Position numbers and translations under genes: made by a program. A stretch of DNA of 63,762 nucleotides, the filler included, from Octopus bimaculoides (Eukaryota), in NCBI RefSeq assembly GCF_001194135.2. It is 5 parts of 5 records of this genome, joined end to end, with 100 filler letters (N's around TTAATTAATTAA, not from the genome) between each part and the next. Parts side by side here need not be neighbours in the genome. Positions count along the whole stretch, not along the records: positions 40,830 to 57,628 come from NC_068981.1; 4 more parts are not named here. The stretch is one strand, 5' to 3'. Shown here piece by piece: positions 5,083 through 57,628 of this stretch. Position 1 is the stretch's first letter; every line of letters starts with the position of its first letter. The notes beneath the pieces are model-generated. The model searched no databases. It was not told where the DNA came from and worked only from the letters and a program-made list of their open reading frames with translations.

Positions 5083-5732
5083 CAAGCGCATCAAATATGG
5101 AAAAACACGTGTTTTCTGTATAACCAAACCTCGTTTTGCTTAGCTGTATTTTAACTCTAACGTGTGTATTTGCGTAGATTAAACTAAACCGTTCTGTATG
5201 TGTGTATATGTGTATATGTGCATGCCTATGTGTATATCTGTGGGCATATAAGTATGTGAACGAGTGTGGGGAATCGGCTTTCCTGAATGTACTGCCTAAA
5301 TGCAACTGTAAAGTGAATTATTATAAACGATACAATTGATTTTTTAGAGATCATTGAGCTTCATGTAGGTCAAGGAAGAATTTATTGTGAGCATCTATTG
5401 TTTTAGGACACTGGTTGCTTGCTAGATGCCATTATTGAAAATTTATTGTATGGTTGTAAAGTAAATGAAAATAATCATATAGTAAAAATCGTCGAGAGAA
5501 GAAATAAAATAAAGTATGAGAGAAGATACGGAAAAAAAAGTTGTTGCTTTCTATTTCTACACTACCAGAACTAATGGAATAGGTAATGTGAACTTTAATA
5601 AAATGGGAGTAGAAAGGAGGTAGGGATGTTAGGAAGGGAGGCATCAAGATGTAAATGTTTAAGAAAACTGGTATAGACTAGCACATACCATCAAATATAC
5701 ACATGAATAAACACATACTTATATTATGCACG

Positions 5733-5822
<90 letters not shown>

Positions 5823-6689
5823 TGTTTGTATGTATACAGATATATAGATAGATAGATATAGGTAGATACACACACACTAACATATGTATGTGTATGTGTG
5901 TGTGTATATGCCACTGTGCGCATGCTTGCAGATATATTATACATCGCAACTATATGCTTTTGTAAAAAGTATACAAATATATACTGCATGAATTTTGAAC
6001 ATTTTTATTCATGAATACACAAGATATACCAGTATAGATATATAAAATAAACACATTAATTCTATAATAACTAGGCAGTCTCAAAAACATATCTTAAAAG
6101 TGTAAAATTATGATAACCAATGAAAAATATTTCGAAAATATCAATAGCCATAAAAGCTCATGTTACTGCACATATATACTTATATATACCCAAATAAATA
6201 CGTNNNNNNNNNNNNNNNNNNNNNNNNNNNNNNNNNNNNNNNNNNNNNNNNNNNNNNNNNNNNNNNNNNNNNNNNNNNNNNNNNNNNNNNNNNNNNNNNN
6301 NNNNNNNNNNNNNNNNNNNNNNNNNNNNNNNNNNNNNNNNNNNNNNNNNNNNNNNNNNNNNNNNNNNNNNNNNNNNNNNNNNNNNNNNNNNNNNNNNNNN
6401 NNNNNNNNNNNNNNNNNNNNNNNNNNNNNNNNNNNNNNNNNNNNNNNNNNNNNNNNNNNNNNNNNNNNNNNNNNNNNNNNNNNNNNNNNNNNNNNNNNNN
6501 NNNNNNNNNNNNNNNNNNNNNNNNTATATATGCAAATTATGGTATTCATGTATACATTTACAACTGCGCTTACACAGGAATAAGTAAAAAATAATACAAA
6601 ACTTACAAAAGATTCGCGTTACAGTATTGAAGACAAGTTTAAAAACTGATGCTCGCTAAGGGGTGGGACGCAGGCTACTGATATTGATA

Positions 6690-7185
6690 TCAGACTTTTT
6701 GAGAATTTCAAGCTGTGTAGAAAGACAGAGATTTGGTGGTTTGTTTTGGAATATAACCCTGTCCCTGCGGTTCAAAGATTGTAGTTTCCCCCTACGCGTA
6801 CGCATTCACGTTGTCGAAAATGTTCTATGAGATCATGTATATTTAGTGACCACATATTTGGGGGGACAAACCGATGATTGTTATTATCTTGATACATCTG
6901 AAGGAATGTGTATGATAGTAGAATTTATATTTCAAAGTTACTATTGTAAGACCGAGGTAGGTTTTCGGCATCCTTTTATTGTAGCTCCAGTCATCTGTGC
7001 AATACGCTGCCGATTTTATGAGGCAAAGACGGACGGCGAAAACGTTATCGGATCAAAGCAATTACATAAAGGAAGAGGGTTGGAGTTATTACCCAATGAG
7101 ATGTTCCTGGCGTTTTTTTCTAGCTACAATGGGAATTTAATGGTACAGCTTAACATTATTTGGGATGTGTTTAGTACATAGTTTG
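6690..7185 (-). mobile_element. Penelope-like element, GIY-YIG endonuclease end (Naiad-like, tentative)
   Basis: Minus strand across frameshifts: LCNCFDP...CLIKSAAY...KTYLGLTIVTLKYKFYYHTHSFR...GLS.KYVWSL. Same motif order as the element at 11170-12535. Confidence 0.55.
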
Positions 7186-7439
7186 TGGTGCCTGTCGTTA
7201 CTGGGAGAGACTGCTTGTACTAAACTATTAAAAGTGAGGCGTATGCAATCATTATAACCTACAAAGAGCAAATATTTGAAAAGTAAAGCTTGTCGTTATA
7301 ATCCGAATGATCGGACACGTGTAAGTCGTAGAACTGAGATTGGGAGCTTTTCAATATTTAATAAATTTTTAAAATCTCCACATTTATGTTTTGAAATCTG
7401 CAATTTATCGCTTCAGGTAAAACAATATATATATTTGTT

Positions 7440-7787
7440 TCTTTTATTCTTATACTTGTTTCAGCCATTTGACTGGGGCCAAGCTGGTGCACCGTCTTTT
7501 AGTCGAAGAAATCGACCTCTGGACTTATTCTTTGTAAGCCTGGTATTTATTCTATCGGGCTCTACTGCCGAACCACGTGGTAACAGGAACGTAAATACAC
7601 TAACATCGATTGTCAAGCAATGGTGGGGGGGGGGATATAGACACAAAGACACATACATAAATATATACATATATATATATGACGGGCTTCTTTCAGTTTC
7701 CGTCTGCCAAATCCAGCCTCAAGGCTTTGGTCGGCCCTATGCTAAAGTAGACGACACTTGCCCAAGGGGCCACGCAGCAGGACTGAT
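7440..7787 (-). mobile_element. Octopus tRNA-derived SINE, family A (CORE-like, with internal microsatellite), 5'-truncated
   Basis: Plus-strand acacttgcccaagg (antisense of the CORE-like ccttgggcaagtgt), gacgggcttctttcagtttcc and tgtttcagccatttgact are shared with the copies at 27771, 29011 and 62390. Confidence 0.8.
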
Positions 7788-7809
7788 GTAGTTCTAGGTA
7801 GTGGTTCTA

Positions 7810-8847
7810 CATGCCCTGATGCAGTAGCAGGTACTGGCTCTCATGTCCTCTGACATTAACTGATCGGAAGTGTTACCATGTACATTGTTTTGTCTTGGTA
7901 TAAAAGATGGGCTACAGCAAATATTCTGCTCAATACCACAGATTTGCTCGTCAGCTGCTTGACATTAACCAGTTGAGCATGTTCCTTATTGGCAGACGAT
8001 ATGTGCATCTCTGATCACGAGTAGAAATAGTGGGGGACCATCATAGCCATATGTTGAGATGAATTCTTTAAGGTTTGGATAATTCACCTTTGGAAACATG
8101 AGTGTTTTGCTCATCATCCTTAAACAATCCTTATTTAGGGACCTTTTGAGCGGGACGCTCTATTCGACCTGAACAAAACTCTAACTGGGCCCCACCTGCA
8201 AGGTTATGTGATGTTTATCATGATATGAGATCACTATGTTGCGCACATATGGTTGTGATGCATGTGCTTTTTGTACCCTTATATAAATGCCCTGATGCAG
8301 TACCAATGCCCTGCCTAATACAGTATACATGCCCTGATGCAGTACCAGGCATTGGCTCTCATGGCTTCTGATCCTAAATGATTCTAAGTGTTACCATGCA
8401 TATTGTTTTGTCTTGGTATAAAAGATGGGCTACAACAAATATTCTGCTCAATACCATAGATTTGCTTGTCAGTTGCTTGATCTTAACCAGCTGAGCATGT
8501 CCCATAGTGGTTGACGAAATGTGCATCTCTGATCACGAATAGAAGTAGTGAGTATGATAGTCATGTGTTGAGGGGAATTCTTTGGGGTTTGGATAATTCA
8601 CCTTTAGAAACCTGGGTGTTTTGTTCACCATCCTTATACAACCCTTATTCAGGGACCTTTTCAGCTGGATGGGCTACTTTACCTGAAGAAAATTCTAACT
8701 GGGCCCCACCTGCATGGTCATGCACAAATATGGTTGTGATGCATATACCTGGTGTACCCTTATCAGACGAGTAATCATGATGGGTATAGGGGGCTTCGTA
8801 TATTTTACCCCAGTGTCATTTTGATTGCATCCACTGCTCTCTTACTC
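7810..8847 (+). repeat. Two tandem diverged copies of a ~500-bp interspersed element; the second ends in an (AAT)n tail; family unresolved
   Basis: 7810-8283 and 8328-8847 are colinear. Both start catgccctgatgcagta and share ttgttttgtcttggtataaaagatgggctaca and ctaactgggccccacctgca. Extra copies of the 5' motif lie at 8287 and 8306. Confidence 0.75.
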
Positions 8848-9188
<341 letters not shown>

Positions 9189-11169
9189 TTGCTATTCATA
9201 TCCAGGTTTTATCACTTCTATTCTGGCTGACTTCGCGTTCTTAATCACTGCGATTCTTTGTTTCTCTCTTTTACTCTGTATGCATGTAATTTGCATTGAG
9301 CTTTGCTACTGTTATCCACATGATTTTGTATACTTTTCTAATGCATTACCCAATCCTGATTAAGAAGTGATATCTTAAATCTTAATGGATAAGGAAGTGC
9401 TTTTCAGATATGAATTTCAACAGACAGTAAGGCAACGCCAACAGAAAATTTGACTGAAGAGCGGCGAGCTCTTGATAGGATAAAAGTGATAAATCAGCCA
9501 TTCCGTTTCTGCTAGTGCAAATAATTCATTTCAAATAAAGCATATTCATTCCGTCACAGTGAATCCTAACTTAAATCTGTAATTTAAAGCTTTCTTTGTT
9601 TTTATCATGTGATTAATATTGCTTAACCCGGCGGAGCTGTTATCTATCATCTATTAATATTGACAATATAGCATGTATTTTTTTTAATTGACTTTCCATC
9701 TAATTGCGATTTTCATATATTTACGAATACTAAGCTAATTTCACACCCGTTTGTTACGTTTACAGTAATTGGAAATCAATATATATTCTAATTGTGCCAT
9801 TTCACTTTTGTAGTTCAGAGGCTGCAATCAAATTTTGACATCCTTTTTACGAACGAACAACAACTCAGCAATTCTATCAGTTCCTTTTGACATATTTCAT
9901 TTCCACAGAAAAATGTAAATGGCTAATGACAAATTGTAATATTCGAGAGTAAATGTCAATGATAACTGCCAACCGTATTTAAACAATGCACGAAGGACTC
10001 TTTTTTATATACATGAATTTGTGTATTTTTGCATACGCGTGTTTGTATTTGATACCACAAAACTACTGCTACTTTTATGTTGCTTTCAATGAAGTCATAT
10101 CACTAGCTTCGGGCCACACTTTCGATGAAGCAGGCTAATAAAATGATGCGTCCCTGGGTCGGAATTTGTCGCCGTAGTTCAGATTACTTCAGATTGCTGA
10201 TAGTTTGATTTTATTTTCAGTAAGAGTGTAGAATACCACTGCCATTCTTCAGGGGTACACACACGCACNNNNNNNNNNNNNNNNNNNNNNNNNNNNNNNN
10301 NNNNNNNNNNNNNNNNNNNNNNNNNNNNNNNNNNNNNNNNNNNNNNNNNNNNNNNNNNNNNNNNNNNNATAACATAATATGAATGTAAATAATAAAGATA
10401 TTAATTTTTAAGTTGTTTCAACTGAAACCAATTTCATGGCCTTAAATATATAACAAATCATTTATTTACTACTCAGTCACACATGAAATAATAAATATCA
10501 GTAACATGTTAAAATTTATTCATTTGATTTTACATTTAAAAAAAAAAGTTATAAACAACAAAATTTAAAACAAGTTTGGTTATATTGAGTTTCTTTCCCA
10601 CCCCAAAAAAACAAAGTCAAAATCAAGAATTCAGTTATTTGTTTTTTCTTTTCTTCAAAGATTTTTTTTTCTTTGAGATATCACAGAACAGATGAAGTTT
10701 ATATTTTTTCTAGGACATTAGCTGCCTTTTAACACCTATTTCAGCACCAACAAAAGAGAATTATATATATGTGTGTATACATATATATATATTTATATTA
10801 TTTTGTTTGAAAGAGTTCCAACTCTGTCTGTTTTTTATGTTTTATTTATATTCTTGTAAAATTAATGTGGGATATAGAATATGGAATATACAATATATAA
10901 TATAAAAATGGATAGTACAATGAAATGAAGTTTGAGTGTCTTATTGAATATATGGAATATGTCTTGTTGAAGATATGAAATATTGAGTGTTCAATATAAA
11001 GGATTAAATATATAAAGGGAAATACGTATTTTCTATACCTTGTGGTATTTCATCATGGCCGGTATGACAGACTGTAACAGTCATAATTGGAAGTAACAAT
11101 AATGGAAATCGTATAAGAAATGTAACTCAATGAATCGTTTCTTCTGTTTTTGACAGTATCGAGCCGAGT

Positions 11170-40829: not shown

Positions 40830-42239
40830 TTTTAAAAGATACTGATTTAATTCAAAATTAACAAGGCAGTGAGTAGTGTTTGAAAGTTGATTGATTAATA
40901 TTTTTGATGATAGCAACAACTTATCCTATAATCAAAACAGCCCAAATGCCTAAACTACAACACAAATCTCCAACTGGTTTCAATAAATCAATTGAATATA
41001 GTTTTACAAAGCTTCATTCAGATGGACTACATTCATTTGCTTTATTAATCATTTTTATGATTGTTTTAAACTAGGGAATAATATTATTTTGAAAAGTAGG
41101 CCCTTGTCCCCTTAACTTTGAAATGTGAAATGTAAAAAAAAAACAAAAAAAAAAAAACTTTTATTTCTAAGATACGAAAACATTTTTTATGTTGCTTAGT
41201 AAATTATTGCAATCAGCAATATTAAACTTCCTAGAATAAGCATTGAATAAACAAGCCTAACTATGGAAATAACTAAATGTAGGGCAGTTGATGAAAAAAA
41301 ATAATGAAAAACAGAAAAAATCTCAATTATAACTAATTCGTTTACACGGGAGATTAGCGAAGTACTTCATGAACCCAAACAGCTTGCTATAACAGGATAG
41401 TTAGTCTACTAAAAATAACTAACTATTTAGATTAACAGATTTCCTTTGGGGTTTCATTAGCAGCTACAACTAACAACCTTTATGAATACCATTCATAGAA
41501 TATTTGTGTAACCAGCAGACAGAGTATCAATGACTACTTGACCAACCAACAACGTACACAGTACCACCATTGAAGCCATTCATTATGAGCTTTAATTTTC
41601 AAAATCTAAATATAACTGTTCCAATATTTTAACTTTACTTAAAACTTTGGTAGCTAAGACTATACTGAGATAGTCAAATTACTAAATGAAGAACGTTGTA
41701 AATACTCTGCTATTTATTACTGCAGATATATAAATTCTATTAATTTATTAAACAACACTTAAAAAGGAAAGACTGGTAAGTGCATATCTAATATTTAATA
41801 AAAAGACACTTTTTAAAACAATTCACCAATAATGAGCTAGTTTAATAAATATATTGAGTTTATTGCACTATATAAAGAGAGAGACTTGCAACTTCTTGTG
41901 ACAGCATTTGAAAGCAAGACGTTTAAATTATACAAAACTAATATCTTATTGATATCTTACTAAGAAAAAAATTCAAACTATTTTAATTTATCAACAATGG
42001 CAAGAACTCTCTCTCTCTCTGATATGTTAAAATTGTCAAACCCATCCAATACTCAGTTGGTTTTGTAAGTTGACTAGGACAAATACCATCAAGGATATCA
42101 ATAAAGCAAACTTATTCACTCTTTCAATATAATGGCGAATTATTAGCGTTGATTTCTCTATCTGTGCGTGTTGACATATACAAGAGTATGGTTGCTTTGT
42201 CATTTTCTGACACCTTATATATATACACACACACACACA

Positions 42240-42895
42240 CAGGGTGGCCATGAAGTCATGCACCATCGTGCAATATGTGAAACTGCTAACATTCTCTTTT
42301 TTGATCTCTTTTCCCAACTGCCGATATTACTCACAACCCAATCCTCATTGGATGGAGGCAGATAATCAACAAAGCAGGGGCAAGGTGATGGTGTGGTGTG
42401 GGATTTGGCACAATCAAGTAATCAGACCATTTTATTTTGAGGGACATGCTTGGCAAGATGATGCCTCGTGTGCATTCATTTGGAAGGGGAAATCCTGTCT
42501 GGTAACAGCAGGACGGGGCTCTGCCCCATTATGCATTACAGGTTCGTGATTTTCTGTATGAACATTCTCCAGGAAAATGGACTCGAGCATCGCGGGCCAA
42601 ATGAATGGGCACCACAGTCACCATGGACTTTTTCTTCTGGGGCTACATTAAATCCCTTGTGTATTCTGAACAGATTTGTGACCAAGGACATCTTCAAAGG
42701 ATTGTTGAAGCATGTGAACAAGTCAACGGCATTGAAGAGCTATTTGAGAGGGTTCATCGCAATTTCAAATTCCATATGAACACTTGTTTAGAGCTACATG
42801 GCCAACATTTTGAACATTTGTAATGGATTACCTACTTCATTGCTAATAAAGCATACTTGATATCTCCCATGGTGCATGACATTGTGGCCACCCTG
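42240..42895 (+). mobile_element. Internally deleted IS630-Tc1-mariner element with TIRs
   Basis: 27-bp imperfect TIRs (CAGGGTGGCCAnnnnGTCATGCACCAT). Transposase remnants: KVMVWCGIW...IRPFYFEG and MDFFFWGYIKSLVY...CLELHGQHFEHL. Confidence 0.85.
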
Positions 42896-45329
42896 TGTGT
42901 ATATATAAAATGGTAAAATACTAAAGTAAAGGTATGTCACCAAATGTAATAATCATTAAGAAGACACGTCAGTTTCATGCTTTTTTTTTCTTTTCTTTTG
43001 GTAGCACCAATTCAATCACATTTTGACTCTTGTAAAGCTGGCATTACATTACACATTTGAGAGAGAAAATATAATTCTCTATAAGAGCTGATCACAACTT
43101 AAGGAAAAGTTCCAAAATTTTAGCCGTTTCAAATTGTAAGTGTGATCAGCTGCACCAGCAGAGAGGAAAAGAACAGAAAGGTACAACCAGAAAATACAAC
43201 TCGTGAATAATGTGTAGGCAAATGCAAGCACTAATTTAAAGGAACTGTTAAATGTAGTATCATCTCAGTTATGGTCAGTAGCCGTATCACTGGAAATAAC
43301 AGTTAATCCTTCTCTGGGCTTCCTTAGATAGCAACTTGGTTTCGTGTCTTTGCAAAAGTGTCATTCAATGCAGTGAAACATAGGCATGTAACAGTTTAAA
43401 ATGGCTCCTCATCTTTACTTCATAGTTATAATAACACTTGATGATTCAATAGAACAGCTAATAACTAATGATGTCACAAACTTGTGATATGATATAGTTT
43501 TGTGGTCATACAAAAGACCTGTATCCCATTAAACCAAATAGAAATGTAGTAATATAGGACAAGAGATTGTTATTGTTAAAAGTAAGAATACAATATAACC
43601 AACTGTTTGGGTGTGCCCCATATGTCATGCTTCAAGCTACATATTGAGCAAAAGTGCAATGAAACTTGTGAACTGTTTTCTATTCTAAAAAGGACAAAAC
43701 TGACTATGAAGGCAGATTTCGTCAACACTATAAAGTGATTATAACAATCAGTTGTAATGTTACAAAAGTGTAGTAAGTTCACTCAAAAAATATAGACTAA
43801 TATAAAATATAGATATCTGAACCTGTATTTCACTATGCCTGCTGGTTGAATCGTAAGAGCATCAGATGGTGGCTGAATGGACACAAGTTTATAACTTGCT
43901 GTACTTAAATACACTTAGCTGTAAATAGTTACCATGAGGAGGTATAAATGTTGCAAGTGGAGAAGAGAGACAAATTAATTAATAAGTTGCAGTGTTGATA
44001 TCAATCTTCTCCAATTGCAAGAGAGAAATGCCTCAATACACTATAGTACTGATACTATTTGAGATAAATTTCCAATGGACAAAATTATTTTCTGGTTGTT
44101 ACTATCATCATCATTATTATTTCTATTTGTATGTCTGTTCAATGCTAGCATGGGGAGTGGGGTGGAAAGGTGTTAAAAATTCAAACAGGTTGTAGAGTAG
44201 AGCAGATAGGAAGCATTTGGAGAATTCAGATTCTTTCATGCTACATATACATGCATTATACCTGGTTTAATTCATACCATAAAATATATTAAATCTGGCA
44301 TTAAAACTATCCATTCTAATGTTTAATCCCAAGTCAGCCCTGATCAAGTAAACGACCATCCTCTCCATATTTATTTTCTTTGATTTTTTTTTTTTAGTCA
44401 GGAGGTAGGGGCAACTAGATGGAGGAAGGGAGAAAGGTTTCTCCTCAAACTGGAAGCTTGGCCCAGTTGGAAACTTAGCCCAAATGCTTGCAACATAGAG
44501 AAACTCCATTAAAAGCACTTAAAAGTATCAGGTGGGCAATGAGTTAGGTCTACCACCCAGAATGTAAAGAGCCAGAACAAATTCTGCAAGGTGTCCAACC
44601 CAATGTTCTTCCAGTTCAGCCAATTAACCACCTTGGTTTGGTACTGTTTTTAAATAAAATAAATCCTGAAAGGATGAACAGCAAAGCTGACCATGGCAGG
44701 ATTTGGACTCAGGGAGCCAGAACAAACACTGCAAAGCATTTTTTGTCTATTGACTGCCAATTCACCTAATAACCAACCAAGTTATATCTATGCTTAGATC
44801 ATCATATTGGCACGGTCAACCCGACCTTTTTTTTTTTTTTTTTATTGATGAGATGCAATTTGGTTGCTATTTGTACCAGGCTTGTATTTTCCGAAGTAGA
44901 ACATCATTATTTTTAATCAAATTGTGTTAATGTAAATGCTTTAAGATATTAACTAACACCAAAAATACCGGTTTTAAATATAAGTTGTTTAAAAGAAGAG
45001 TTATATTTTGAAAAATTTGTTGCAGAAAGCTTAGAGTTAAAAGACCTAAGAAACCTTTCAAGGATGAAATGAAAATTGGTTTTGTAACTCTTACTTCATT
45101 ATTGTTAGGTTAAATTAGCTAATGACAGTTTTAGAGAAAAGGATTATCCTTGCTGCTTCATGCAACAGTTAAAGAGATACAAATAAGTGAGAACTGGGAA
45201 TCGATAACGAAATGAAGTATTTTGATAAATCCAAAAAGAACTATTTAGAAAATCTAACAGGCATAAGACTAAAAGTTATAGCCATCCAGAAGATAGTGTT
45301 TTCAATATATATATGTGTATATATATATA

Positions 45330-45386
<57 letters not shown>

Positions 45387-46259
45387 TTTAAAAAGGCTGT
45401 CATCTTTTAAAGCTAAGTTACAGATTTTTCTGAAACGCACTACACTGAATAGCATTATTCCTTGATTCATTCAAGTGGGGGTCCCCCCCCCCAATTTATA
45501 TGAAGTTTGGCTACGGCTTAAATAAACGGTCTGTGAACCCTGTAGTCAATCTCCTGTTAGATGATATACCAGACTACATTAATCTACCAGATCACTCAGT
45601 GAATTATTAACATACTAAACTAGTATGGACCACAATTATAACCTTTGAAGTAAACACACTCAATATATGAACCAACTTCATTAAAAAAAAAATTTGATTC
45701 TAAATAACTTGTAAATAGTTCAATGGGAAGCAAAAACAGAAGTGTGAGAATATCATCTAGCTACAGGTATTGAAGTTATAAACTAAATATATTGTGGTAA
45801 AAAACCATATAAAAATTAGGTTTCAGGAAAGAAACAAAAAACTTGATGTGATCGTTCCTTTTTAAAATTAGTACAAGATTAACTAATAATAATTTTTAAG
45901 AAACTACCACTACTGACTCACCCAAAATAATAAATAACTATAAAATACGGCTTATTCTTTGTTTTCTAAAATTGCTCAGAAATTCATTTACAGGTTTCAG
46001 TTATTGTATCTTTTTATAATTTTATTTGTTATAAAGAATGAATGTTTACAAATTGTTGTCCTTCCTAACACCCGTTATGTAAATTCCTGCATCATCAGAA
46101 AACCTGTTTGTTTCACTTATTACAGTTTTTGATAGAAATGTAGATCATTCTAGCTATCCTATGCCATAACTTATAACTTAAAGATTAAAAAACTTGCTGA
46201 GCCTAAGAATTCCAAATCACAAATGAAGTGGCATGAAAGTGACTAATAATAACAATAAT

Positions 46260-46440
46260 AATCCTTTCCATTATAGGCACATGGCCTCAAATTTTGGATG
46301 AGGAGGCTAGTTGATTACATTAACCCCAGCAGTCAACTAGCACTTATTTTATCAACCCCAAAAGAACAAAAGGCAATGCTGACCTTGCCAGATGCCACTA
46401 AGCATAGGTGTGCTAATGATTATGTCAGCTTGCTGCCTTA
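46260..46440 (-). mobile_element. SINE family B, CpG-decayed
   Basis: Reads ttttatcaaccccaaaagaacaaaaggcaatgctgaccttg where the family B antisense has tcgaccccgaaaggatgaaaggcaa.gtcgacctcg; the CpGs are converted. Confidence 0.7.
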
Positions 46441-47304
46441 ATAATAAGTTGTAATTCAAAATGGGGGAGAGGGATTGATGGGGAATTTAGTTGCATTGTC
46501 TGTGTGTTGGTTAAAATAAGCATGTGTAAGTTAAAACGTATAATTAAAAAGGATTGTAGTGAATTCTGATCTGGAAATGATATTGAAATCCAATGATTTT
46601 AGTGGTGACCTTGAAAACAACATACACGAATGAATGCATGCATATATATATATATATATATATATGCATGCACATGCACACACACACACACACACACACC
46701 AAAATAGTTGGGCATGTTATGCACAGATATTTCAGACCAGTATCCTTATCTTAGTTGCTAAGGTCATACCACTTTAGCCAGTGAACACTCCATCCCCTTT
46801 GAGTAAGCATCTGTTGTATTTCAGTAAAGTTCTTAGTATTTTGAAGCAAACTCTTTATTAAATCAATGCAAACATATTGTTCTCATTTTGTTGTTCCTGT
46901 CTGGGGTATCCTATCAGTTATCCTCCTACTTGTGATGTCACTTGCTCATTTTGCTTGAACCAGAGTATATGTTGCTGAAGTAGCACAGGTATTGATTGAA
47001 TTCACAGCCACAAGCCAAACCACTACACTTAAACACTTGACATTTAATCAACACATATTCAGTATCTTATTGTCCTAGAGAACAATTAAGTAATGGAAAT
47101 ACATAGGTTTAAATCTAACTTCTGATAATGAGAAGAATTTACATGACTGGTAGTAGGAAGGACTGTGTGTATGTATATATGCAGCAATGTTTACATTCCA
47201 GGTCTTCACATGAAAGTTTTTTCCCTGAAAATTGTAAAATTTGTTGACATACCATGTCCATGAAAACAGATAAAGGTTAGCGGAAGATGTATCATCATTT
47301 AAAG

Positions 47305-47560
47305 TTCATTCTCCATTTGTCTGTTTTGGCATGGTTTCCATGGCTGGATGCCTTTCCTAATGCCAACCACTATAAAGTGTACTGGGTGCTTTTATGTGGT
47401 ACTGGCATGGGTGCTTTTACACAGTACCAGCACTAACAAGCCTGCAAGGCTAGGGTCTCTTGGCTGAGAGAGGGATGTAGAAGACATGTTCATGTGCATG
47501 GATAGTCACAATTTTACTTAGCTTGATGTGTCTTCTCAAGCACAGCAAACTGCCGAAAGT
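47305..47560 (-). mobile_element. 3' UTR fragment of the RTE-like LINE
   Basis: ttgatgtgtcttctcaagcacagcaaa and catggctggatgcctttcctaatgccaacc are antisense to parts of 54130-54790. Confidence 0.7.
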
Positions 47561-50045
47561 GGTTGTAAAACAATACCTCAGTATATATCTGTCAAACCCA
47601 GTGAAAAACATATAAAATGAACATACATGCATGTTAAAGCTTCTAAATTTTATCACTTAATTGTTTGACAAGGCAATTGGATAGAGAATACATATGTCAG
47701 GTACAAGCAGAAAGAGCAACATCATAAATAGGGGAATGAGTAAGAGAGTATTCCTGGAATGGACAACAGAATAAGAATTATCACCCCTCTGTGGTTTTAA
47801 TAAAGGGTTCAGCTTAAAGCATCAAGAACATTACTGAATGTTCTTGAAGAATACAGGAGAGTAGGGTGTTGCAATGGCCAAAACATTGTGACTATAACAA
47901 TCAAGATGAGGACAAAATGTGTTTGTAAGACACACAAATGTACACAAAATAAAATAGTTGATAAAGGATAATCATGTATAAATAGAAGTTATGAACAAAA
48001 TATGTGTAACTAGATGTTGCTAGAATATGATAGTATATATTGTATTTTGAAGAAAATATTATCAATGTTTTAACATCCATTTTTCATGCTGGTATGAAGT
48101 TCACTCCAGTCACATAGTTATGAGTTCCTTGCCACTGTGCAGCATCTTAGGCAAGTCTTTTTTAACCATACATAACCGTAAATCAAACCATAACATTTTG
48201 GGGTGAACATTGAATCCATTGCCCAGTTTTTAACATCAACAGCTAGCTTTAGAATACTTTTAACAGAGTTTTAAGCATTTGGATGAAGTTTCTGGTCTGA
48301 GGAAGACTTGATATTCTGTAATACACTACATTAATCATGTTTTCTTCTTCCACCTCTCTCAAGGGTCTTGGAGACCCTGCAAAAGGTCAGAAGCTCTGAT
48401 GTTCCCCTTCTGACTAAAGCAATTACATGTCTGCTTTACAGCTTATGACTCATCTTGATTCTTTATAATTCACCTGTGGGTCCTTGAAATCAAATCTCAA
48501 CCACAATGATAATCAAAATTAAATCTGTTACATCACAAAATTTTAAACATAACTGAGTATCTTGAAAATTCTAATCATAATTTCAGCTAGGTTATTAAGT
48601 GTGGAGAAGGAAAATGAAAGACAATGCCAACTTTTACTTTTGACAAACCTTGTACAATGTCATGTTTCCTGGACAACTTAGCTATCAGATTATAAATATA
48701 GTAATTATGTCAGCTTCAGGCTAGTACAACAAAATTACTAGGTCAAATATAAATCTGTTGTCCATTAGCTAAAAATGTAAGAATGGATGGATGTTTAAAA
48801 TTCAACAATTACTGTTATCTTCATTATACAGCAAGACATAATATCATCATAAGTAAATAGTTACTATTTTGTATATTTGTTGATCAAAGATAATTTCAAG
48901 CTCTCACCTAAACTTCTCAACTTTCATGACACTAATAAAACCTGAAATAAAACAGGTTTAACCCAATATCTTTAAATCTTTTAAGATTTAAAACATTTTA
49001 AGCATACCCATGATTGCTCTATCATTACATGAAACAACCAGAAATGTCTATTCCTCTTACTTCACAGTAAAGTGATTGTCAATATACAAGTAGTGATTCA
49101 ATAATTGCTGACAGACTCCATACCAATATTTAAATTTCAGAACAATACAACCTTGGTTAGTATAGAAATAACTGGTGTAAAAAAAAAACATAAAAGGGCA
49201 TTTTATTAAAATGTCTTATTTTTTTTAATTAGTCGCAATTGTTAAAAATTAAATTTTCATACAAACACACTCTCATACAGAAAACAGTTTTTAAAATATT
49301 GAAACACATCAACCAGAGAAGAAGCTGTTTGTTTAAATTGCCAACATAAGCAAGCAGGTATTATTAAACCAGTGAAATTAAGATGATCAAGAATACAAAA
49401 TACTGCCACCATCTATTTACAATGTATACAAATTCATCAGTAACTTTTAAATCAAACAAATTGTTAATAAGAATCTAATTGCTATTTACACAGTATAAAA
49501 TAGATAAATATGTTTTGCTGGACTAATTTCACTTTACAAAAATAAAATCTGTCAAGGAGGAGGGCAGTAATTTTCAATAAGAACTGACATGGACCATGAC
49601 AACCTACCTAACCCATGCCAACATGGAAAGCAGACATAAAATGATGATGATTATAATGAAAGTTACATATATTACTGATATTATTCTTTGCTAAAATATC
49701 ATACTAAATGTTTTTGAAATTCTTTGTTATTTTCTATGCAAATTCATTTCTTTTACCTGACACCCTTATTTTGATGCTTCTTTCGCATACAAACACTAAC
49801 ATGGAGTTAAATTATTGCACTTAGTATAGCAAACATATTCCACTAATCAAATCATTCTTATTTTTATTTCACAATACAGTATGTATGGTGAGAAGATCTT
49901 TGTCATTAACACATATAGATGTTATACTGAAGATAGTGAATTTACTATATAGTGTCTTAGCCTCAACTATCAGATATTATTGTAAGACATATTGTGTGTG
50001 TATGTATGTATATNNNNNNNNNNNNNNNNNNNNNNNNNNNNNNNN

Positions 50046-50081
<36 letters not shown>

Positions 50082-50803
50082 ATAAGCCCTATACACCACA
50101 ATTTTTATTTAAGAAAAATTATGCTCCATTTATTGGTAAAAAGATGGTTGTATTACTATTTCATAGCAGTTGTAAAACTCTTCTCAATAAGACAGAAATT
50201 TGTCACTAAACAAATTAAGAGCAATATCTTTTATAGTCACATACATACACAATGATGCTATCAGAAACAAATACCTAACCTAAAATGTAGTTCTTTTGGT
50301 TTTTCTTTCTTTTTCAATGATCATAAAACTATAAGTGTGCATGAACTGTTTATTTCTCAAACTGTACTTATATTGGGATAAACTTTCTTTGTCAAATGTT
50401 TCAGACTTTAATAAAAACAAATATTTATTACATAAAGCTGTTCTTTGTTTTATTTCTTTCCAAAACACTGAAATATTATTATTAAAATTAGTTCCAAACT
50501 CATTGAACAGAATATTTCAAAAATATGTTAACTAGAAAAGACCAACTAAAAATGTATAGTGCTCATGGAAATTAGTTAAAAATAATTTTAAAAAAGTATT
50601 ATAGAAAATTAGGTTAATGTAAGGTGAATCTTAATGATCATCTGCACTCCATTTTTTTCTTCTTTCTTTTTTTAGGATTATTCAATTTTAGGCATCAGTA
50701 ATGCTAAAGTAACCAATACATATATTTCAATTACAACAAGCCATTGTAACATCTTTAAATATAAATCGGCAAAATTGATGGTTATTCTTGCAATGAAACT
50801 TAC

Positions 50804-50952
50804 CTGGGTGTCAATATATGTTTCTATCTTTGGTTCTACAGCTAATTCAGCTTCTAAGATTCGTTCAACAGGCATATCAACATTTGCACTGCTGGTGCTC
50901 TCTACTTCGCCTTCTCCTTTTTCTTTCACACGTTGACGTTCTTCTTGAACAG
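50804..50952 (-). CDS. RXR: Internal coding exon of retinoid X receptor (NR2B): T-box, hinge and LBD helix 1
   Basis: 149 nt between acceptor ttttgtctttttgcag and donor gtaagt. Phase 1 to phase 0. Encodes (A)[57 protein letters not shown] and [15 protein letters not shown] are RXR/USP hallmarks, and the short ...YIDTQ end is mollusc-like. Confidence 0.96.
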
Positions 50953-53929
50953 CTGCAAAAAGACAAAAGCAACAATCAAATCTCTAACACCTTGTAAATT
51001 TATGCCGGCAGATTTAGCTTAAATGTAATCACTATAACATTGGAATAAAAGACTCTTGAAGAAATGAAAATGACAAATGAACAGTTTCTAATTAGAATCA
51101 CTTGACATAAAAACGTAGTAACAAGAGATATAAAATAAAAAATAGACATTCAGAAAATTTGATTGTTTCTTTAGAAATTTAATCACAGTTAATTACTGTA
51201 TTTTCATATACTTTGCCTTTTGAAACACGTATACAGATAAAAGATAAATGAAATTCAATTCAGTGGTTAACTTTCCAAGAGATGCTAAATACATTTATTT
51301 GTTTGAGATTCCATCTAACTGTATTTGCAACAAACATGACAAACATGAATCAATGACTGTCACAGTCATTCTACAACATACAAAACTATAAAGTAACAGC
51401 AGTTAAGGTTTCTATTGTTAAATAACATTGTTGATCTATGTCTGTGACAAGTTGATATATTATAGATGCACAAAACACCTAATGATCAATAGATTCACAA
51501 AAGAAACAGAAATAAAAACAAGTATTAGTATAAATCATATCTAAGAGGTAAAAATTTTAAAACAGGAATGACAAATTGGCATAGTAACCAAGTTACTCCA
51601 GGCTATTCAACTACACCTACATTAAACCACTGAACTAAATCTCCTATTCCACTTTGAAACATTTCAAATTACTTTTATGTAACCTTGCAGTGAACATCAA
51701 CCTCAAAATAGACACAGGTATTTCTATTTACAACCCTTTCAATACACCACTGACTGAGTGACTAAGTTACTTAATGACATTTAGTCATATCTAATGGCAT
51801 CCAATGACAAAGAGCTGCAGCTGTCACATTTGATAAACTATGTATTAAGGACCTGACCCAAACATTAAATATTTATGTAACAAACCAAAAAAGCAATCAA
51901 ATCATTTGACATATTGTTAACGGTGAAAGATGAAAAGTTGAACAAACACTTTTTCTCTATTCTGTTTCTTCTAGAGTCAGAATTAAAACCGCAATGAACT
52001 TCATAAATTGTGTAACCTAACGAAAACAAAAAAACTTTTCTGGTTGAAAACTGCTGTTGTCAAGTGACAGAGAGTCTGTTGTTAGCATTTCTAGGGAGTA
52101 TATTATGCTACATTTCAGACAATGTGACATGAGTGTAAAGCTGTGGTATTGAGTTATATTCTCTGCTCACTCTTCATCCTTTACATTTTATTCTAAATTG
52201 TGGGAATCAGAATGGCAGGATTAGGTTTCCTATATTTCTGGGTGACTGGCAGATCCAAGATCAAAGTTCCTTGCTTAGCTGTACTTCAGATTAATCACCT
52301 GTGCTGTGTAGTTTTGTTAGTAAATTCAAAAGCAGGACTAATAAATGCTGAAATATAACACTTATCATAAAGACAGTCTAAATAATTGCTTTCAAACTAC
52401 TAATACACACCAGAACGCTCTGGTGCTTTCTTCCTAAAATAAATATATAGATTATAAATTGGAAAAAATTGAAACAAACATTCTTAAGGCTTTTTGAATG
52501 CAAGGATAAACCTTTTACTTAATAAACCATTATATTCTAGGTCCATTCATACTAAACAGAGCTTTAGATAATTATCTTCTATAATATCTTTGGATTGATG
52601 CCCTGACAATGAAATATAGAGAGCAAATTTCTAAGGAGCCTGTTGTGTGTGTGGATAAAAATCTGTGAAACAAATATAGCATGATGTCTAAATATTACAA
52701 TGTATGTTCCATGTTTGAATTATTAAGTACCAGACTAAAGTATTGGGGTCAACATAATTAACTAAAACTATTTAAGTCAATGTCCTAATTTGGATGTAAT
52801 TGAAAGCTACAAACCATCAAATAATTGTATTTACCTTATTTTTCTTTCAGAAATTAAAGTGCTTGTAGAAACTTGAAAGTTAAACAGTAATTTAAGACTA
52901 TTAGCACAGAGCAGAAAATGAGAGCTGAACAACAAAATGTCAATTTATTGCTTTTATTCACCATATGGTGCAAGATAAAACTAAAATATTGTAAAATTAA
53001 CAATTTATACTCTGAAACTATGGGGTGTGTGTGCAATGAAGGTTTTACTACCTAGATCAATATTATCAACAAGCTGCTAAATAACGACACTAGAAAAGGA
53101 AACTAGAACCCCACCTACCAATATATGATACAATATTATTAAATGTAAAACCTTGTACAGAAATCAGGCTTCAATGACATTTCAAAGTTAACAGACTAGA
53201 AATCTGCAGAACTGAAAACAAGAACAGCCTCAGTATTTGCGATAAACTATTAACAATACAATCTTATGCATAATTGTTTGAGATTAAGAATCTCCTAAGA
53301 ATGTCCATTCCTAACAAAGCACCTCCAGAAAAAGAAGGGTCAGAGATAATGTATTTTTGTAGAGAAAGATATGTTTAGTTTCAGCTTTCTGTTCATGTTG
53401 CCAAGTTTATTACCAACTGCTCTTATGAATCCTCTAACCACAAACTAGTTATGTACTGAAAAGATAAGAAGCAACAACAAAAATAATAGCACTTCAGTAT
53501 ACTGATGACCAAAATATCAAGATATGTTATGTTTTTAAGTACACTGCAAAAAATAAATAATTGATATCTAACATTCCTAACCACTACTTTGAAATATTTT
53601 CAGCTTGAGATTAGACAAGAAGAATGAGGTTAACTAGATAAATGGATTATTCACAATGAGAAACATGTCAAGCAAATCTATTTCATGCAAGCTCAACACA
53701 ACATAGGTATTTTCTAGGAATATAGCTAAGTATTTAATAACTGCTCAAGTTGTTTGCAACAAAACACAAGTTGTTTTATAACTTATCATGCAACATATTT
53801 TTTTCTATTGTACCAAAAGTGCAGTGAAATTTAACTGCATGAGGTCAGGCAAAGCTCTGATGTATGTGCTATATCAGTGTGCATGTATGACAAAGCATTT
53901 ATGTTTTAAGAGAAAAACTGTGTAAAAGA

Positions 53930-54790
53930 CATCAGATGTAGTGTGCAAGAGAGAAGACTGTGCTGGCATGGCCATATAATGCATATGGATGAGGAGAGCT
54001 GGTATCTAATTGTGGAGGGAACCTGTGGAAGAAGTAGACCCAGGAAGACAATGGGACAAAGTGATGAGAAGTGATCTTCAGATGCTGAGCCTCAAGAGTT
54101 GACAAGGAACCGAAACAACTGGTGATTTGCTGTGCTTGAGAAGACACGCATCAAGTTAAGTAAAATCACAGCCATACAAGCATGTCCTCTATGGCCAAGC
54201 CCCCACCCTGCCTCACAATCTATCCACAACCAGTCTTCTTCCCCCATTCTCCTTCATGTGCCTACCTGCACACATACTACATGCCCTCACATATCTACCA
54301 TAGTCCTCAGCCACTCCAATTTCTCTCACCATCACCTCTTTCCTGTCTCTAAATATCTCAATTCGCACTCTTATGGAACATCTCCATCTACCCCAGCTGT
54401 ATCACATATTCACCTCCACTGTCTTGTAAGTATGAGCCCCACCCACATCGCCAACTCCATCTATTTCTCTGCCTGTCTCTCTCTGACTATCATTTCTTTT
54501 CCTACTGGGGTAACCAAGTATCTTACAAAGCCGCTTCCCTCAGTATCACTCCCTGTCCCAGCCAAGAGGCTCTTGTAAGTCTTATAAGTTACTTGGCAAC
54601 CCTGGTGGTGTTGGAGCCACATAAAAGCACCCAGTACATTCTGTAAAATGGTTGGCGTTATGAAGGACATCCAACCATAGAAACCATGTCAAAACAGACA
54701 ATGGAGCCTAGTGCAGTTCTCTGGTTTATTGGCTCCTGTTTTACTATCTAATCCATGCCAGCATGGAAAATGAATACTAAATGATGATAT
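53930..54790 (+). mobile_element. 3' end of an RTE-clade LINE with 3' UTR
   Basis: IRCSVQERRLCWHGHIMHMD...VEGTCGRSRPRKT..DKVMRSDL, then a pyrimidine-rich UTR ending ccatgccagcatggaaaatgaatactaaatgatgat. Confidence 0.8.
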
Positions 54791-55827
54791 ATAAACTCAA
54801 TAACAAAATTACATTTCTGTTATATTACTTATGTTATCAGATTACTTTGCACATATAAAAAATTAAATTGGGGAATAAAATTAAATATTCAGCTTGGCAC
54901 TATCAAGAAAGCATAGCCCTATCCAACATCACTAAAATTTTAAGTATTCAGCCAATTTTTTAGCAGTGATTGTAGTGCCTAAATGCTAGTATAGCCACTG
55001 ATTTGTAGACAGACATGACACCAATAAGATTAAAACTTAGCAGTGTAAAGTCACAAACAAATCATTACAAACAGACTTGGCATGAAATCTTTTAAAATCT
55101 ATTTCATAAATACAAACAACTAAATTCCTCCACGGATAATCCTACATCACAATAAACTCAACTATTTTCAATAAGTTTTTAAATTCACGAAGACTGTTGG
55201 ATTAGCCAAGATCAATGTTTTGTTTCCGGAGAGTGGCCTACAACACAGTGTGTGTGACCATGACTGACTAAATGGCCTTGTCCAGTTAACTGTAAGCAAC
55301 TAAAGCACTTTACTCAGATCCACATTTTAAGACAGAGCAAACGTATAGTCAAATGAATTAAGCCTAGTATATTACTCATAGATAATTTATCCAACCTTAG
55401 AGTAGGATGGTAAAGTTTACCAAAGTAAGGTTTAAAGAAACAGTTAACTGTTCATTCCCGAGTATTCTGACTAAAAATCTTGCTTCATCTAGAGTTATAT
55501 AACATTTCGAAGCTACAAAAGTAATTTTTTGTAACTGTTTGATACCAACTCACCTTAGACTACTTTTAAATCTAATACAAATCTTTGTTTCAAAAACAAT
55601 GTCCATATTTGAATTAAAACTGTCAGTGCCTTTTCTTACATTATGTTCCAAACATGAATATAATTACAAATAAGTTAATTATTTTACTAAATCTTACCTA
55701 ACTTTTTTATTATTTTCAAAATTGATTGAAACATACAGAGACAATATATTTTCCAGAGAAATATACAATGTAAGTGGTATAGAAATTTAGGAATAACAAT
55801 GTAATTCACTCAACACGCATGCACGCG

Positions 55828-55859
<32 letters not shown>

Positions 55860-55980
55860 AAGACCCAATTATTAATGTGAGTCAAAAAGCACAACATCTG
55901 GACCACTAAGTTTGATGCCTGGATGGGGTACCATGTTCTTGAGCAATAAACTTCATTTCCCATTGTACCAATCTACTCAC

Positions 55981-56028
55981 CTGAAACAAAAACCAGCCTA
56001 GTGCTGGTGCATCCCTCACTCCCTCTAG
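55981..56028 (-). CDS. RXR: Candidate 48-nt alternative cassette exon of RXR (T-box insertion)
   Basis: Minus strand tttacag|CTAGAGGGAGTGAGGGATGCACCAGCACTAGGCTGGTTTTTGTTTCAG|gtgagt. Phase 1-1, no stop; adds ARGSEGCTSTRLVFVS before AVQEER. No transcript evidence. Confidence 0.45.
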
Positions 56029-57164
56029 CTGTAAACATACTAGATTTTGCAAGGTGAAAGTTAGAAGGGTTGAGAAAGTGTTAATGACTGCTAGTGACTA
56101 CATGGGCACCAAAAATAAGTGGTGAAAGTGTGGTCCAGCAGAAAGATAGGCAAGGAATAAAACTATTTAAATACCACAAACATTTTGACCAAATTTAAAT
56201 GTAAAAGAGAAATAACAAACTGGGACATACAGACTTTTTCCAGAGTATTGGCAACATTAATGATTCCAAGCGAAAAATGGAACTAACTTATTAAACCCTA
56301 GACAGGGATAGAATTAAATGTGAACAGAAATTCTCAAGTAATGCCTCAATTTAATTTTCAAATTGTGTAATTTCAACACTGTTCCATTAACAAAACACTG
56401 CAGTCCTATGATGTATAATCATTATCTTTTATATCACTAATGTATCATAAAAAAAAAAAAAAACTAATGTACAAACAATTTCATTTATTATACAATATCT
56501 TTACAGACTTTATGTAGATGCATTATTCTTTGCAACGATATGTTTCTATTCAGTCTTCACCAACTCTGACCTTAGTTGCAGTAAAAAAAAAAAAAAAAGC
56601 AGGAAATTCATTCTCATGCATGTTGGGACTTAAGTTTTAATTCAATATGTTGGCAATTATTTAGTATGTATTCCAGATGCCACTACAAATAGGAAGGAAG
56701 GCAATAAGGTTGCAAACGGAGTTGACTTCTCCATGTTGCTTCTGCATTTCACGTCCATATTAACAACACATCCATAAGACATATAATCTGGTCATACACA
56801 TAGATTTATTATATACGTGATTTTTTGTTAGAACTGATTATTCATTTTGAATGAAATATAAAGCCAATGTGATTAAGCGGACCTAGGATTGAATTTCTCT
56901 ACCGTGTAAATGGCACTGGCAACTTAAGTTAAAAGTCTCTCACTCACATTGACAAAAACACCTTCAATTATATCAATTTGCCTCTTCAATAATACTCAAG
57001 CCATAGTAGGTCAATAAACATTGCCCTACAAAATAAACATCACATTCATCCATCAAAGAATGAACCTATCATTCTCAACCTGCTAAAAATAGTTAAATCA
57101 CATGAACAACCTGTTGACTTAGTGTCTTTAGCCTATCTATTTCTATCATGCAAATAGTGGCCCA

Positions 57165-57264
57165 TTAAACATACCTATATATACCTACACGCACACATAT
57201 ATATATATATACATACACACACATAGGTATACATATATATCCATACACATATATAAATATATAG

Positions 57265-57326
<62 letters not shown>

Positions 57327-57628
57327 ATATACATACATACAAACACATATACATACATACACATACATATATACACATATACACATACATATATACACAT
57401 ACATATATACACATACATATATACACATACATATATACATACATACATATACACATATATACATACATACATATACATACATACATATACATACATACAC
57501 ACACACACACATATATATACATACATATATACATACACATACATATATATACATACATATATACATACACATACATATATATACATACATATATACATAC
57601 ACATACATATATATACACACATATATAC
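57165..57628. repeat. Compound (TA)n/(CATA)n/(CA)n microsatellite
   Basis: Read directly; source of the YIYI/CMYV ORFs. Confidence 0.95.

Follow-up and report, generated by a model that had tools for sequence, protein, structure and literature searches.

Does the RXR gene of Octopus bimaculoides contain a cassette exon of its own for the T-box, as the RXR genes of other molluscs do? The question is raised by the window, i.e., the whole stretch of 63,762 nucleotides that was analysed. In the part taken from NC_068981.1 (positions 40830-57628) the minus strand carries a 48-nt exon-like segment (55981..56028), which an initial annotation had proposed as a cassette inserted into the RXR T-box.

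The general premise of that proposal was borne out by the literature: isoforms of mollusc RXR with T-box insertions are documented and include true cassette exons in scallop and oyster (PMC3774650, PMC5398557). In Chlamys farreri the four RXR isoforms are identical outside the T-box; their differences stem from the 60-nt cassette exon IV (+20 aa) and from an alternative acceptor of 12 nt (+4 aa) (PMC3774650). For the Pacific oyster RXR an insert of +13 aa was described, unique in sequence according to the authors, and T-box inserts were reported to be without similarity among lineages; the insert sequences in the supplement of that study are ACLSS, ACLST, ACLA, AINSSPSSGSSSISGLDPDE and DVKCSTDAGRQGS (PMC5398557). 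In the snails Thais and Nucella the T-box inserts comprise +5 aa. From the scallop and oyster cases, cassette exons in the intron between the zinc-finger exon and the T-box exon have to be seen as a real, recurrent and lineage-specific feature of molluscs.

The RXR exon and the exon-like segment

The piece 40830-57628 is AT-rich intronic DNA (68 % A+T) of an octopod gene, and the T-box/hinge exon of RXR on the minus strand was its sole recognisable coding exon. This constitutive exon of 149 nt (50804..50952, minus strand) was 90 % identical to a query based on the hinge sequence of the oyster RXR; it starts at 50952, as had been claimed, and its end was located at 50804. Splice sites were scored with a crude, generic position-weight matrix, which rated both sites of this exon as strong: +5.85 bits for the acceptor ttgcttttgtctttttgcag|ct and 8.91 bits for the donor cag|gtaagt. 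Neither the zinc-finger exon nor exons of the ligand-binding domain were found within 40830-57628, thus both introns flanking the RXR exon extend beyond the edges of the piece. Of the upstream intron at least 6.7 kb are in view before it continues past the piece edge.

The T-box exon and the segment share a strand, and the segment is situated 5.0 kb further upstream, in agreement with the initial annotation. Homology to the mollusc gene structure would place it in the intron between the zinc-finger and T-box exons; in the sequences L002, L007 and L011 the zinc-finger exon immediately precedes the T-box exon. Read on the minus strand from 56028 to 55981, the segment has the sequence ctagagggagtgagggatgcaccagcactaggctggtttttgtttcag with a GC content of 52 %; it is preceded by ...cactttctcaacccttctaactttcaccttgcaaaatctagtatgtttacag (in longer context ...ttctaactttcaccttgcaaaatctagtatgtttacag) and followed by gtgagtag. 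Inspection of the sequence and a translation check confirmed the description that had been given of it: the 48 nt between a CAG and a CAG|gtgagt are a multiple of three, in phase 1 at both ends and free of in-frame stop codons. The segment also starts with CT like the constitutive exon, both acceptors reading AG|ct. The reading frame was built with a G from the upstream exon and the CT of the next exon. It translates into ARGSEGCTSTRLVFVS followed by A, or with the bases of the flanking exons into A-RGSEGCTSTRLVFVS-A, and stays open into VQEERQR; the junction codon G|CT encodes alanine at both ends. The N-terminal 11 residues of the predicted insert are rich in Ser, Thr and Gly, and the tail LVFV is hydrophobic. 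On the nucleotide level the 5' half is purine-rich (gagggagtgaggga; 16/22 purines in the first 22 nt) and resembles an exonic splicing enhancer.

Putative splice sites of the segment

The donor is formed by the CAG at 55983-55981 and the start of the downstream intron, gtgagtaga (55972..55980, minus strand). It is a perfect CAG|GTGAGT with 9/9 consensus positions and reached 9.45 bits, the highest value on the minus strand of the piece and above the 8.91 bits of the real exon. The proposed acceptor AG (56029..56030, minus strand; context tatgtttacAG|ct) was weak, with -0.84 bits vs. +5.85 bits in the constitutive exon; its score was equalled or exceeded by 131 AGs of the minus strand of the piece. 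A CAG, a pyrimidine-rich stretch and a branch-like ttctaac had been named as its context. All three are present, but the pyrimidine-rich stretch is situated at -21 to -50 and does not adjoin the acceptor: the last 20 nt (aaaatctagtatgtttacag) are purine-rich and contain no adjoining polypyrimidine tract.

The ttctaac (56060..56066, minus strand) was the only branch-like motif near the proposed acceptor. Its putative branch A at 56061 is 32 nt away from the proposed AG and 21 nt away from a competing AG (56040..56041, minus strand), which is located 11 nt upstream of the proposed acceptor. In vertebrate and yeast splicing the use of the first AG after the branch point is an established rule. 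Applied to the octopus, it would make the upstream AG at 56040..56041 the preferred acceptor, as this AG sits inside the usually AG-free zone and at an ideal distance from the branch-like motif. The resulting exon of 59 nt shifts the frame, and translation would reach a stop after nine codons of the T-box exon. The outcome is the same for another AG, located 4 nt within the segment.

Comparison with T-box inserts of other molluscs

The oyster insert was identified as a 39-nt cassette in oyster-type Logan contigs (L007 5473-5511, L008 4937-4975, L009 1791-1829 and L010 1779-1817), in L007 2.4 kb downstream of the zinc-finger exon and followed by the T-box exon after 1.4 kb. Both junctions of this cassette, gatattacag|ATG...TCAT|gtacgt, are weak (acceptor -0.70 bits, donor +2.23 bits), and it ranked 8th among the 211 frame-compatible candidates of its own intron. 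The cassette of Crassostrea gigas CgRXR-2 (DVKCSTDAGRQGS; GenBank KX591000; PMC5398557) resembles the octopus segment in intron, strand and phase 1-1, in its small size (39 nt vs. 48 nt) and in an equally weak acceptor (-0.70 vs. -0.84 bits). Since the acceptor of a verified cassette scores as low, the weak acceptor does not disqualify the octopus segment, and we dropped it as a decisive argument against a cassette. The two differ in four respects. The oyster cassette is known from cloned cDNA, the octopus candidate from genomic sequence. A weak donor in oyster (CAT|gtacgt) contrasts with a perfect one in octopus. The 40 nt ahead of the oyster acceptor are free of AG, whereas an AG stands at -11 in the octopus segment. 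Finally, the first and last junction codons encode Asp and Ser in oyster, but Ala and Ala in octopus.

Exon IV of the Chlamys farreri RXR (60 nt, +20 aa, AINSSPSSGSSSISGLDPDE; present in CfRXRc and CfRXRd; PMC3774650) is a cassette in the T-box intron, as the octopus candidate would be, and it is inserted at the very place that the octopus peptide would occupy, between Ala and Val of KREAVQEER. Its Ser/Gly-rich insert resembles the first half of the octopus peptide. Evidence for the scallop exon comes from RACE and from the structure of the gene; for the octopus segment no homologue was found, and its peptide ends in a hydrophobic tail. The start of the scallop-like contig L004 (2-52; NCSPSG..TISGLDPDQ, donor caag|gtatat) encodes a probable relative of the C. 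farreri cassette (E = 0.009, 55 % identity over 20 aa).

The same contig carries at 1330-1346 a tandem acceptor, acag|cttgccttgcag|cg, which gives the ACLA insert (+4 aa). Tandem-acceptor inserts of +4 or +5 aa have the same protein position and represent the same kind of isoform as the octopus candidate. They depend, however, on an additional AG placed 12-15 nt ahead of the constitutive acceptor, and the octopus acceptor lacks such an AG: in the last 28 nt before the constitutive exon, gatttgattgttgcttttgtctttttgcag|ct, no AG was found (window 50953-50990, minus strand). An insert of the ACLx type, as in snails and scallop, is thus unavailable to the octopus gene.

Sequence similarity did not connect the octopus peptide to the known inserts. 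When the cassette inserts of oyster and scallop and the peptide of octopus were compared with all loci by tblastn, no meaningful cross-match resulted, and a comparison by eye of the short snail and scallop inserts with the octopus peptide revealed no similarity. An apparent full-length match to P0002 (GRGSEQVNLVSTACLA against ARGSEGCTSTRLVFVS, with RGSE in register) lies in uninterrupted intron sequence without a preceding acceptor and was rejected as a chance similarity. Among 5.8 billion protein clusters no insert-bearing protein was found; octopus RXR is represented there by unspliced genomic ORFs only, and in a collection without any spliced octopus RXR the missing insert is weak evidence. 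Coverage by the octopod contigs L001 and L003 is limited to 52577-49791 and the exon itself, which leaves them 3.4 kb short of the site; in the intron one of them shared 82-84 % identity with the window. Searches for orthologous DNA by way of ORFs, with a six-frame chimera, a 63-aa frame and a chimera of the ±1.3-kb flanks, gave no match. The literature search found no relevant paper on RXR isoforms of cephalopods.

Two further zinc-finger/T-box introns contained open segments. In L011 (invertebrate, ENA ERZ25069859) a 60-nt segment in phase 1-1 at 5412-5471, GVLADGQRQRLGADGNSYVS, has a strong acceptor (+6.2 bits) and a modest donor and is a candidate T-box cassette; a stretch of L012 (5391-5670) is 99 % identical to this region. 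In the compact RXR gene of L002 (ENA ERZ26222911) the zinc-finger/T-box intron (5882-9998) has a length of 4.1 kb, the other introns of 160-500 bp, and it includes a 69-nt frame-compatible candidate at 7079-7147.

Chance expectation

The number of frame-preserving, stop-free pseudo-exons with a combined score equal to or above that of the candidate was counted in first-order Markov simulations of the piece. The expectation was 0.22 per 16.8-kb strand, with at least one such pseudo-exon in 19 % of the simulations; scaled to the 6.7 kb of intron in view it was ~0.09. Overall, we estimate ~0.05-0.2 equally good pseudo-exons in the piece by chance. In 142 kb of real mollusc DNA, with both strands counted, all other matches at the combined score of the candidate overlapped real coding exons. 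The empirical false-positive rate may therefore be lower than the simulated one, below about 0.05 for the intron stretch in view. The candidate exceeds chance only marginally, and its signal consists almost wholly of the perfect donor. The open reading frame is uninformative, as all three minus-strand frames around the site (3/3) are open for 35-63 codons across a GC-richer block.

The GC-richer block and repeats of the piece

This block of ~360 bp (55790..56150) contains the exon-like segment and has a GC content of 0.33-0.53, compared to 0.15-0.30 in the flanks; a (GT)n/(GC)n tract is located inside it at ~55810-55870. The block may be an old inserted element. A self-comparison with blastn and nhmmer detected no second copy in ~20 kb of octopod DNA, and scans against Rfam and for tRNAs gave no match. 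No homologues of ORFs around the site were found in two very large protein collections, searched with the six-frame chimera and, exhaustively with HMMER, with the 63-aa frame. A test for a target-site duplication found no significant flanking direct repeat (p ~0.08). Consensus C, a repeat consensus, aligned to the plus strand at 55938-55983 with 80 % identity over 46 nt. It had been chosen only after the candidate sequence was read and is not independent of it, hence the match was taken as a lead only and not counted as evidence.

Elsewhere in the piece, consensus B, a tRNA-derived, SINE-like sequence, matched the minus strand at 46307-46392 (E = 1.5e-9) and at 44629-44740 (E = 4e-7); both are likely SINE copies, and we consider them real because the consensus had been chosen before these places were viewed. 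On the plus strand at 53910-54071 an open frame (...RRLCWHGHIMHMDEESWYLIVEGTCGRSRPRKT...) resembles the C-terminal motif of the ORF2 proteins of non-LTR retrotransposons and is probably an intronic LINE fragment. The stretches 47311-47549 and 54126-54706 are inverted copies of one repeat, with 86-93 % identity over the aligned parts, and probably represent a transposable element family; the latter copy carries a low-complexity ORF of 148 codons. Simple repeats included an (AT)40 tract (45305-45384), a long imperfect microsatellite of the (TATG/TATA)n type at the piece edge (57169-57627) and an (AC)n tract adjoining an assembly gap of 32 N (50014-50045).

Interpretation of the segment

Taken together, the 48-nt segment is probably an accidental pseudo-exon and not a regular part of any RXR mRNA. 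Intronic pseudo-exons, pairs of splice-site-like sequences that are never spliced, are known from metazoan introns. Like them, the octopus segment is short and open, is bounded by AG and GT within a long intron, and has a weak acceptor and a chance expectation of the order of 0.1 in this piece; it differs from a typical pseudo-exon in its perfect consensus donor, which is rarer there. In this view the segment would be ordinary intronic DNA with a fortuitous perfect 5' splice-site consensus and, equally by chance, an in-phase AG 48 nt upstream in a locally GC-richer, stop-poor stretch. The octopus RXR message would then join the zinc-finger exon directly to 50952, with the segment used at noise level at most; we infer its non-use in the mRNA.

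Several results favour the pseudo-exon. The acceptor scores -0.84 bits vs. +5.85 bits for the neighbouring exon and is equalled or surpassed by the 131 AGs mentioned above; under the first-AG rule the AG at -11 would be chosen in its place and lead to the frameshifting 59-nt exon. The chance expectation is not negligible, and the candidate came from a scan of far more sequence than this piece. The uninformative open frame, the missing similarity to known inserts and, as weak evidence, the lack of an insert-bearing protein point in the same direction. Against the pseudo-exon stand the 9/9 donor, which no other on its strand of the piece surpasses, and the coincidence of all other matches at this combined score in 142 kb with real exons. 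A real oyster cassette has an equally weak acceptor (-0.70 bits) and a much weaker donor (+2.23 bits), the purine-rich 5' half resembles an exonic splicing enhancer, and the Ser/Thr/Gly-rich N-terminal 11 residues are like those of known inserts. Lineage-specific cassettes have been described from the zinc-finger/T-box intron of two bivalve lineages (PMC3774650, PMC5398557).

The initial annotation saw in the segment a real alternative cassette of 48 nt. Such a cassette would place RGSEGCTSTRLVFVSA in frame after the Ala and ahead of the Val in the T-box (KREA^VQEER). In favour of it, the segment agrees with the 60-nt scallop and 39-nt oyster cassettes in position, strand, phase 1-1, length and junction codon (PMC3774650). 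The donor is perfect, the acceptor no worse than that of the oyster cassette, and the segment is the sole non-exon match at the combined score in 142 kb; in a gene with much longer introns, its distance of 5 kb from the T-box exon is roughly proportional to the 1.4 kb in oyster. On the other side, the AG at -11 should prevail over the proposed acceptor or, failing that, compete with it, and its use would break the frame. No polypyrimidine tract adjoins the acceptor, the hydrophobic LVFV tail sets the peptide apart from the known inserts, which are hydrophilic, and the signal of GC content and open frame spans ~360 bp instead of being confined to the 48 nt. For the weighing we assumed a prior of ~0.25 that an octopus T-box cassette exists and of ~0.4 that it falls into the visible part of the intron, and a probability of ~0.1 for so strong a donor in a real cassette vs. 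0.05-0.09 by chance. Priors and donor rate lead to ~0.15 for the cassette. This value does not yet include the AG at -11, which reduces it further; the purine-rich 5' half and the richness of the peptide in Ser, Thr and Gly raised the estimate slightly. An octopus cassette is plausible in kind and unsupported in this instance: the evidence is mixed, we lean against it and regard the in-frame cassette as unlikely.

Less probable still is a cryptic, unproductive exon, for which the strong donor would occasionally recruit U1 and be paired with the AG at 56040, 56029 or 56025. The products would mostly have 59 or 44 nt and shift the frame, so that they would be degraded or encode a truncated protein without the ligand-binding domain; such an exon would be splicing noise or the young exonisation of an inserted element, without isoform function. 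A perfect donor with three AGs clustered in a span of 16 nt, of which two are out of frame, fits this view, as does the site in a GC-richer block that is possibly an old insertion, and the consensus C match offers a lead. The block has, however, neither a second copy in the ~20 kb of octopod DNA nor ORF homologues, and its flanking duplication is not significant.

Read differently, the junction at 55981|55980, tttttgtttcag|gtgagt, is an acceptor that directly abuts a donor, as in a recursive splice site. Zero-length recursive sites are known from Ubx and other long introns of Drosophila and from long vertebrate genes; they are not known from molluscs, and our literature search found no recursive splicing in cephalopods. 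The site tttttgtttCAG|GTGAGT would first serve as acceptor for the zinc-finger exon, then the regenerated 5' splice site would be spliced to 50952, and this removal of a long intron in two steps would leave no trace in the mRNA. As in the Drosophila and vertebrate sites, a pyrimidine-rich CAG|GTGAGT lies inside a long intron (at least 6.7 kb in view, continuing past the piece edge), with 9/10 pyrimidines at -12 to -3 and a consensus donor half. The score of 7.15 was the highest for a motif of this type in 142 kb, at a Markov expectation of 0.07 per 16.8-kb strand. An antisense oyster site scored 7.13, however, so chance sites of such quality do occur; the acceptor half contributed only +2.1 bits (donor half +5.05), the pyrimidine tract is short, and recursive sites of flies and vertebrates sit in introns far longer than the one visible here. 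We consider a recursive site, which would be the first described in a mollusc, highly improbable.

As a pseudo-exon, the segment calls for caution: in a long AT-rich intron a perfect donor with an in-phase AG is to be expected by chance at ~0.1 per stretch of intron as long as the one in view. If the cassette were real after all, the octopus would possess a specific RXR isoform with altered binding to DR1 as homodimer or heterodimer, as proposed for the snail, scallop and oyster isoforms. The octopus would then join these molluscs in a lineage-specific tuning of DNA binding and dimerisation of RXR at the T-box. This would not be surprising; it would extend a recurring molluscan theme to the cephalopods and provide a handle on retinoid and organotin signalling.
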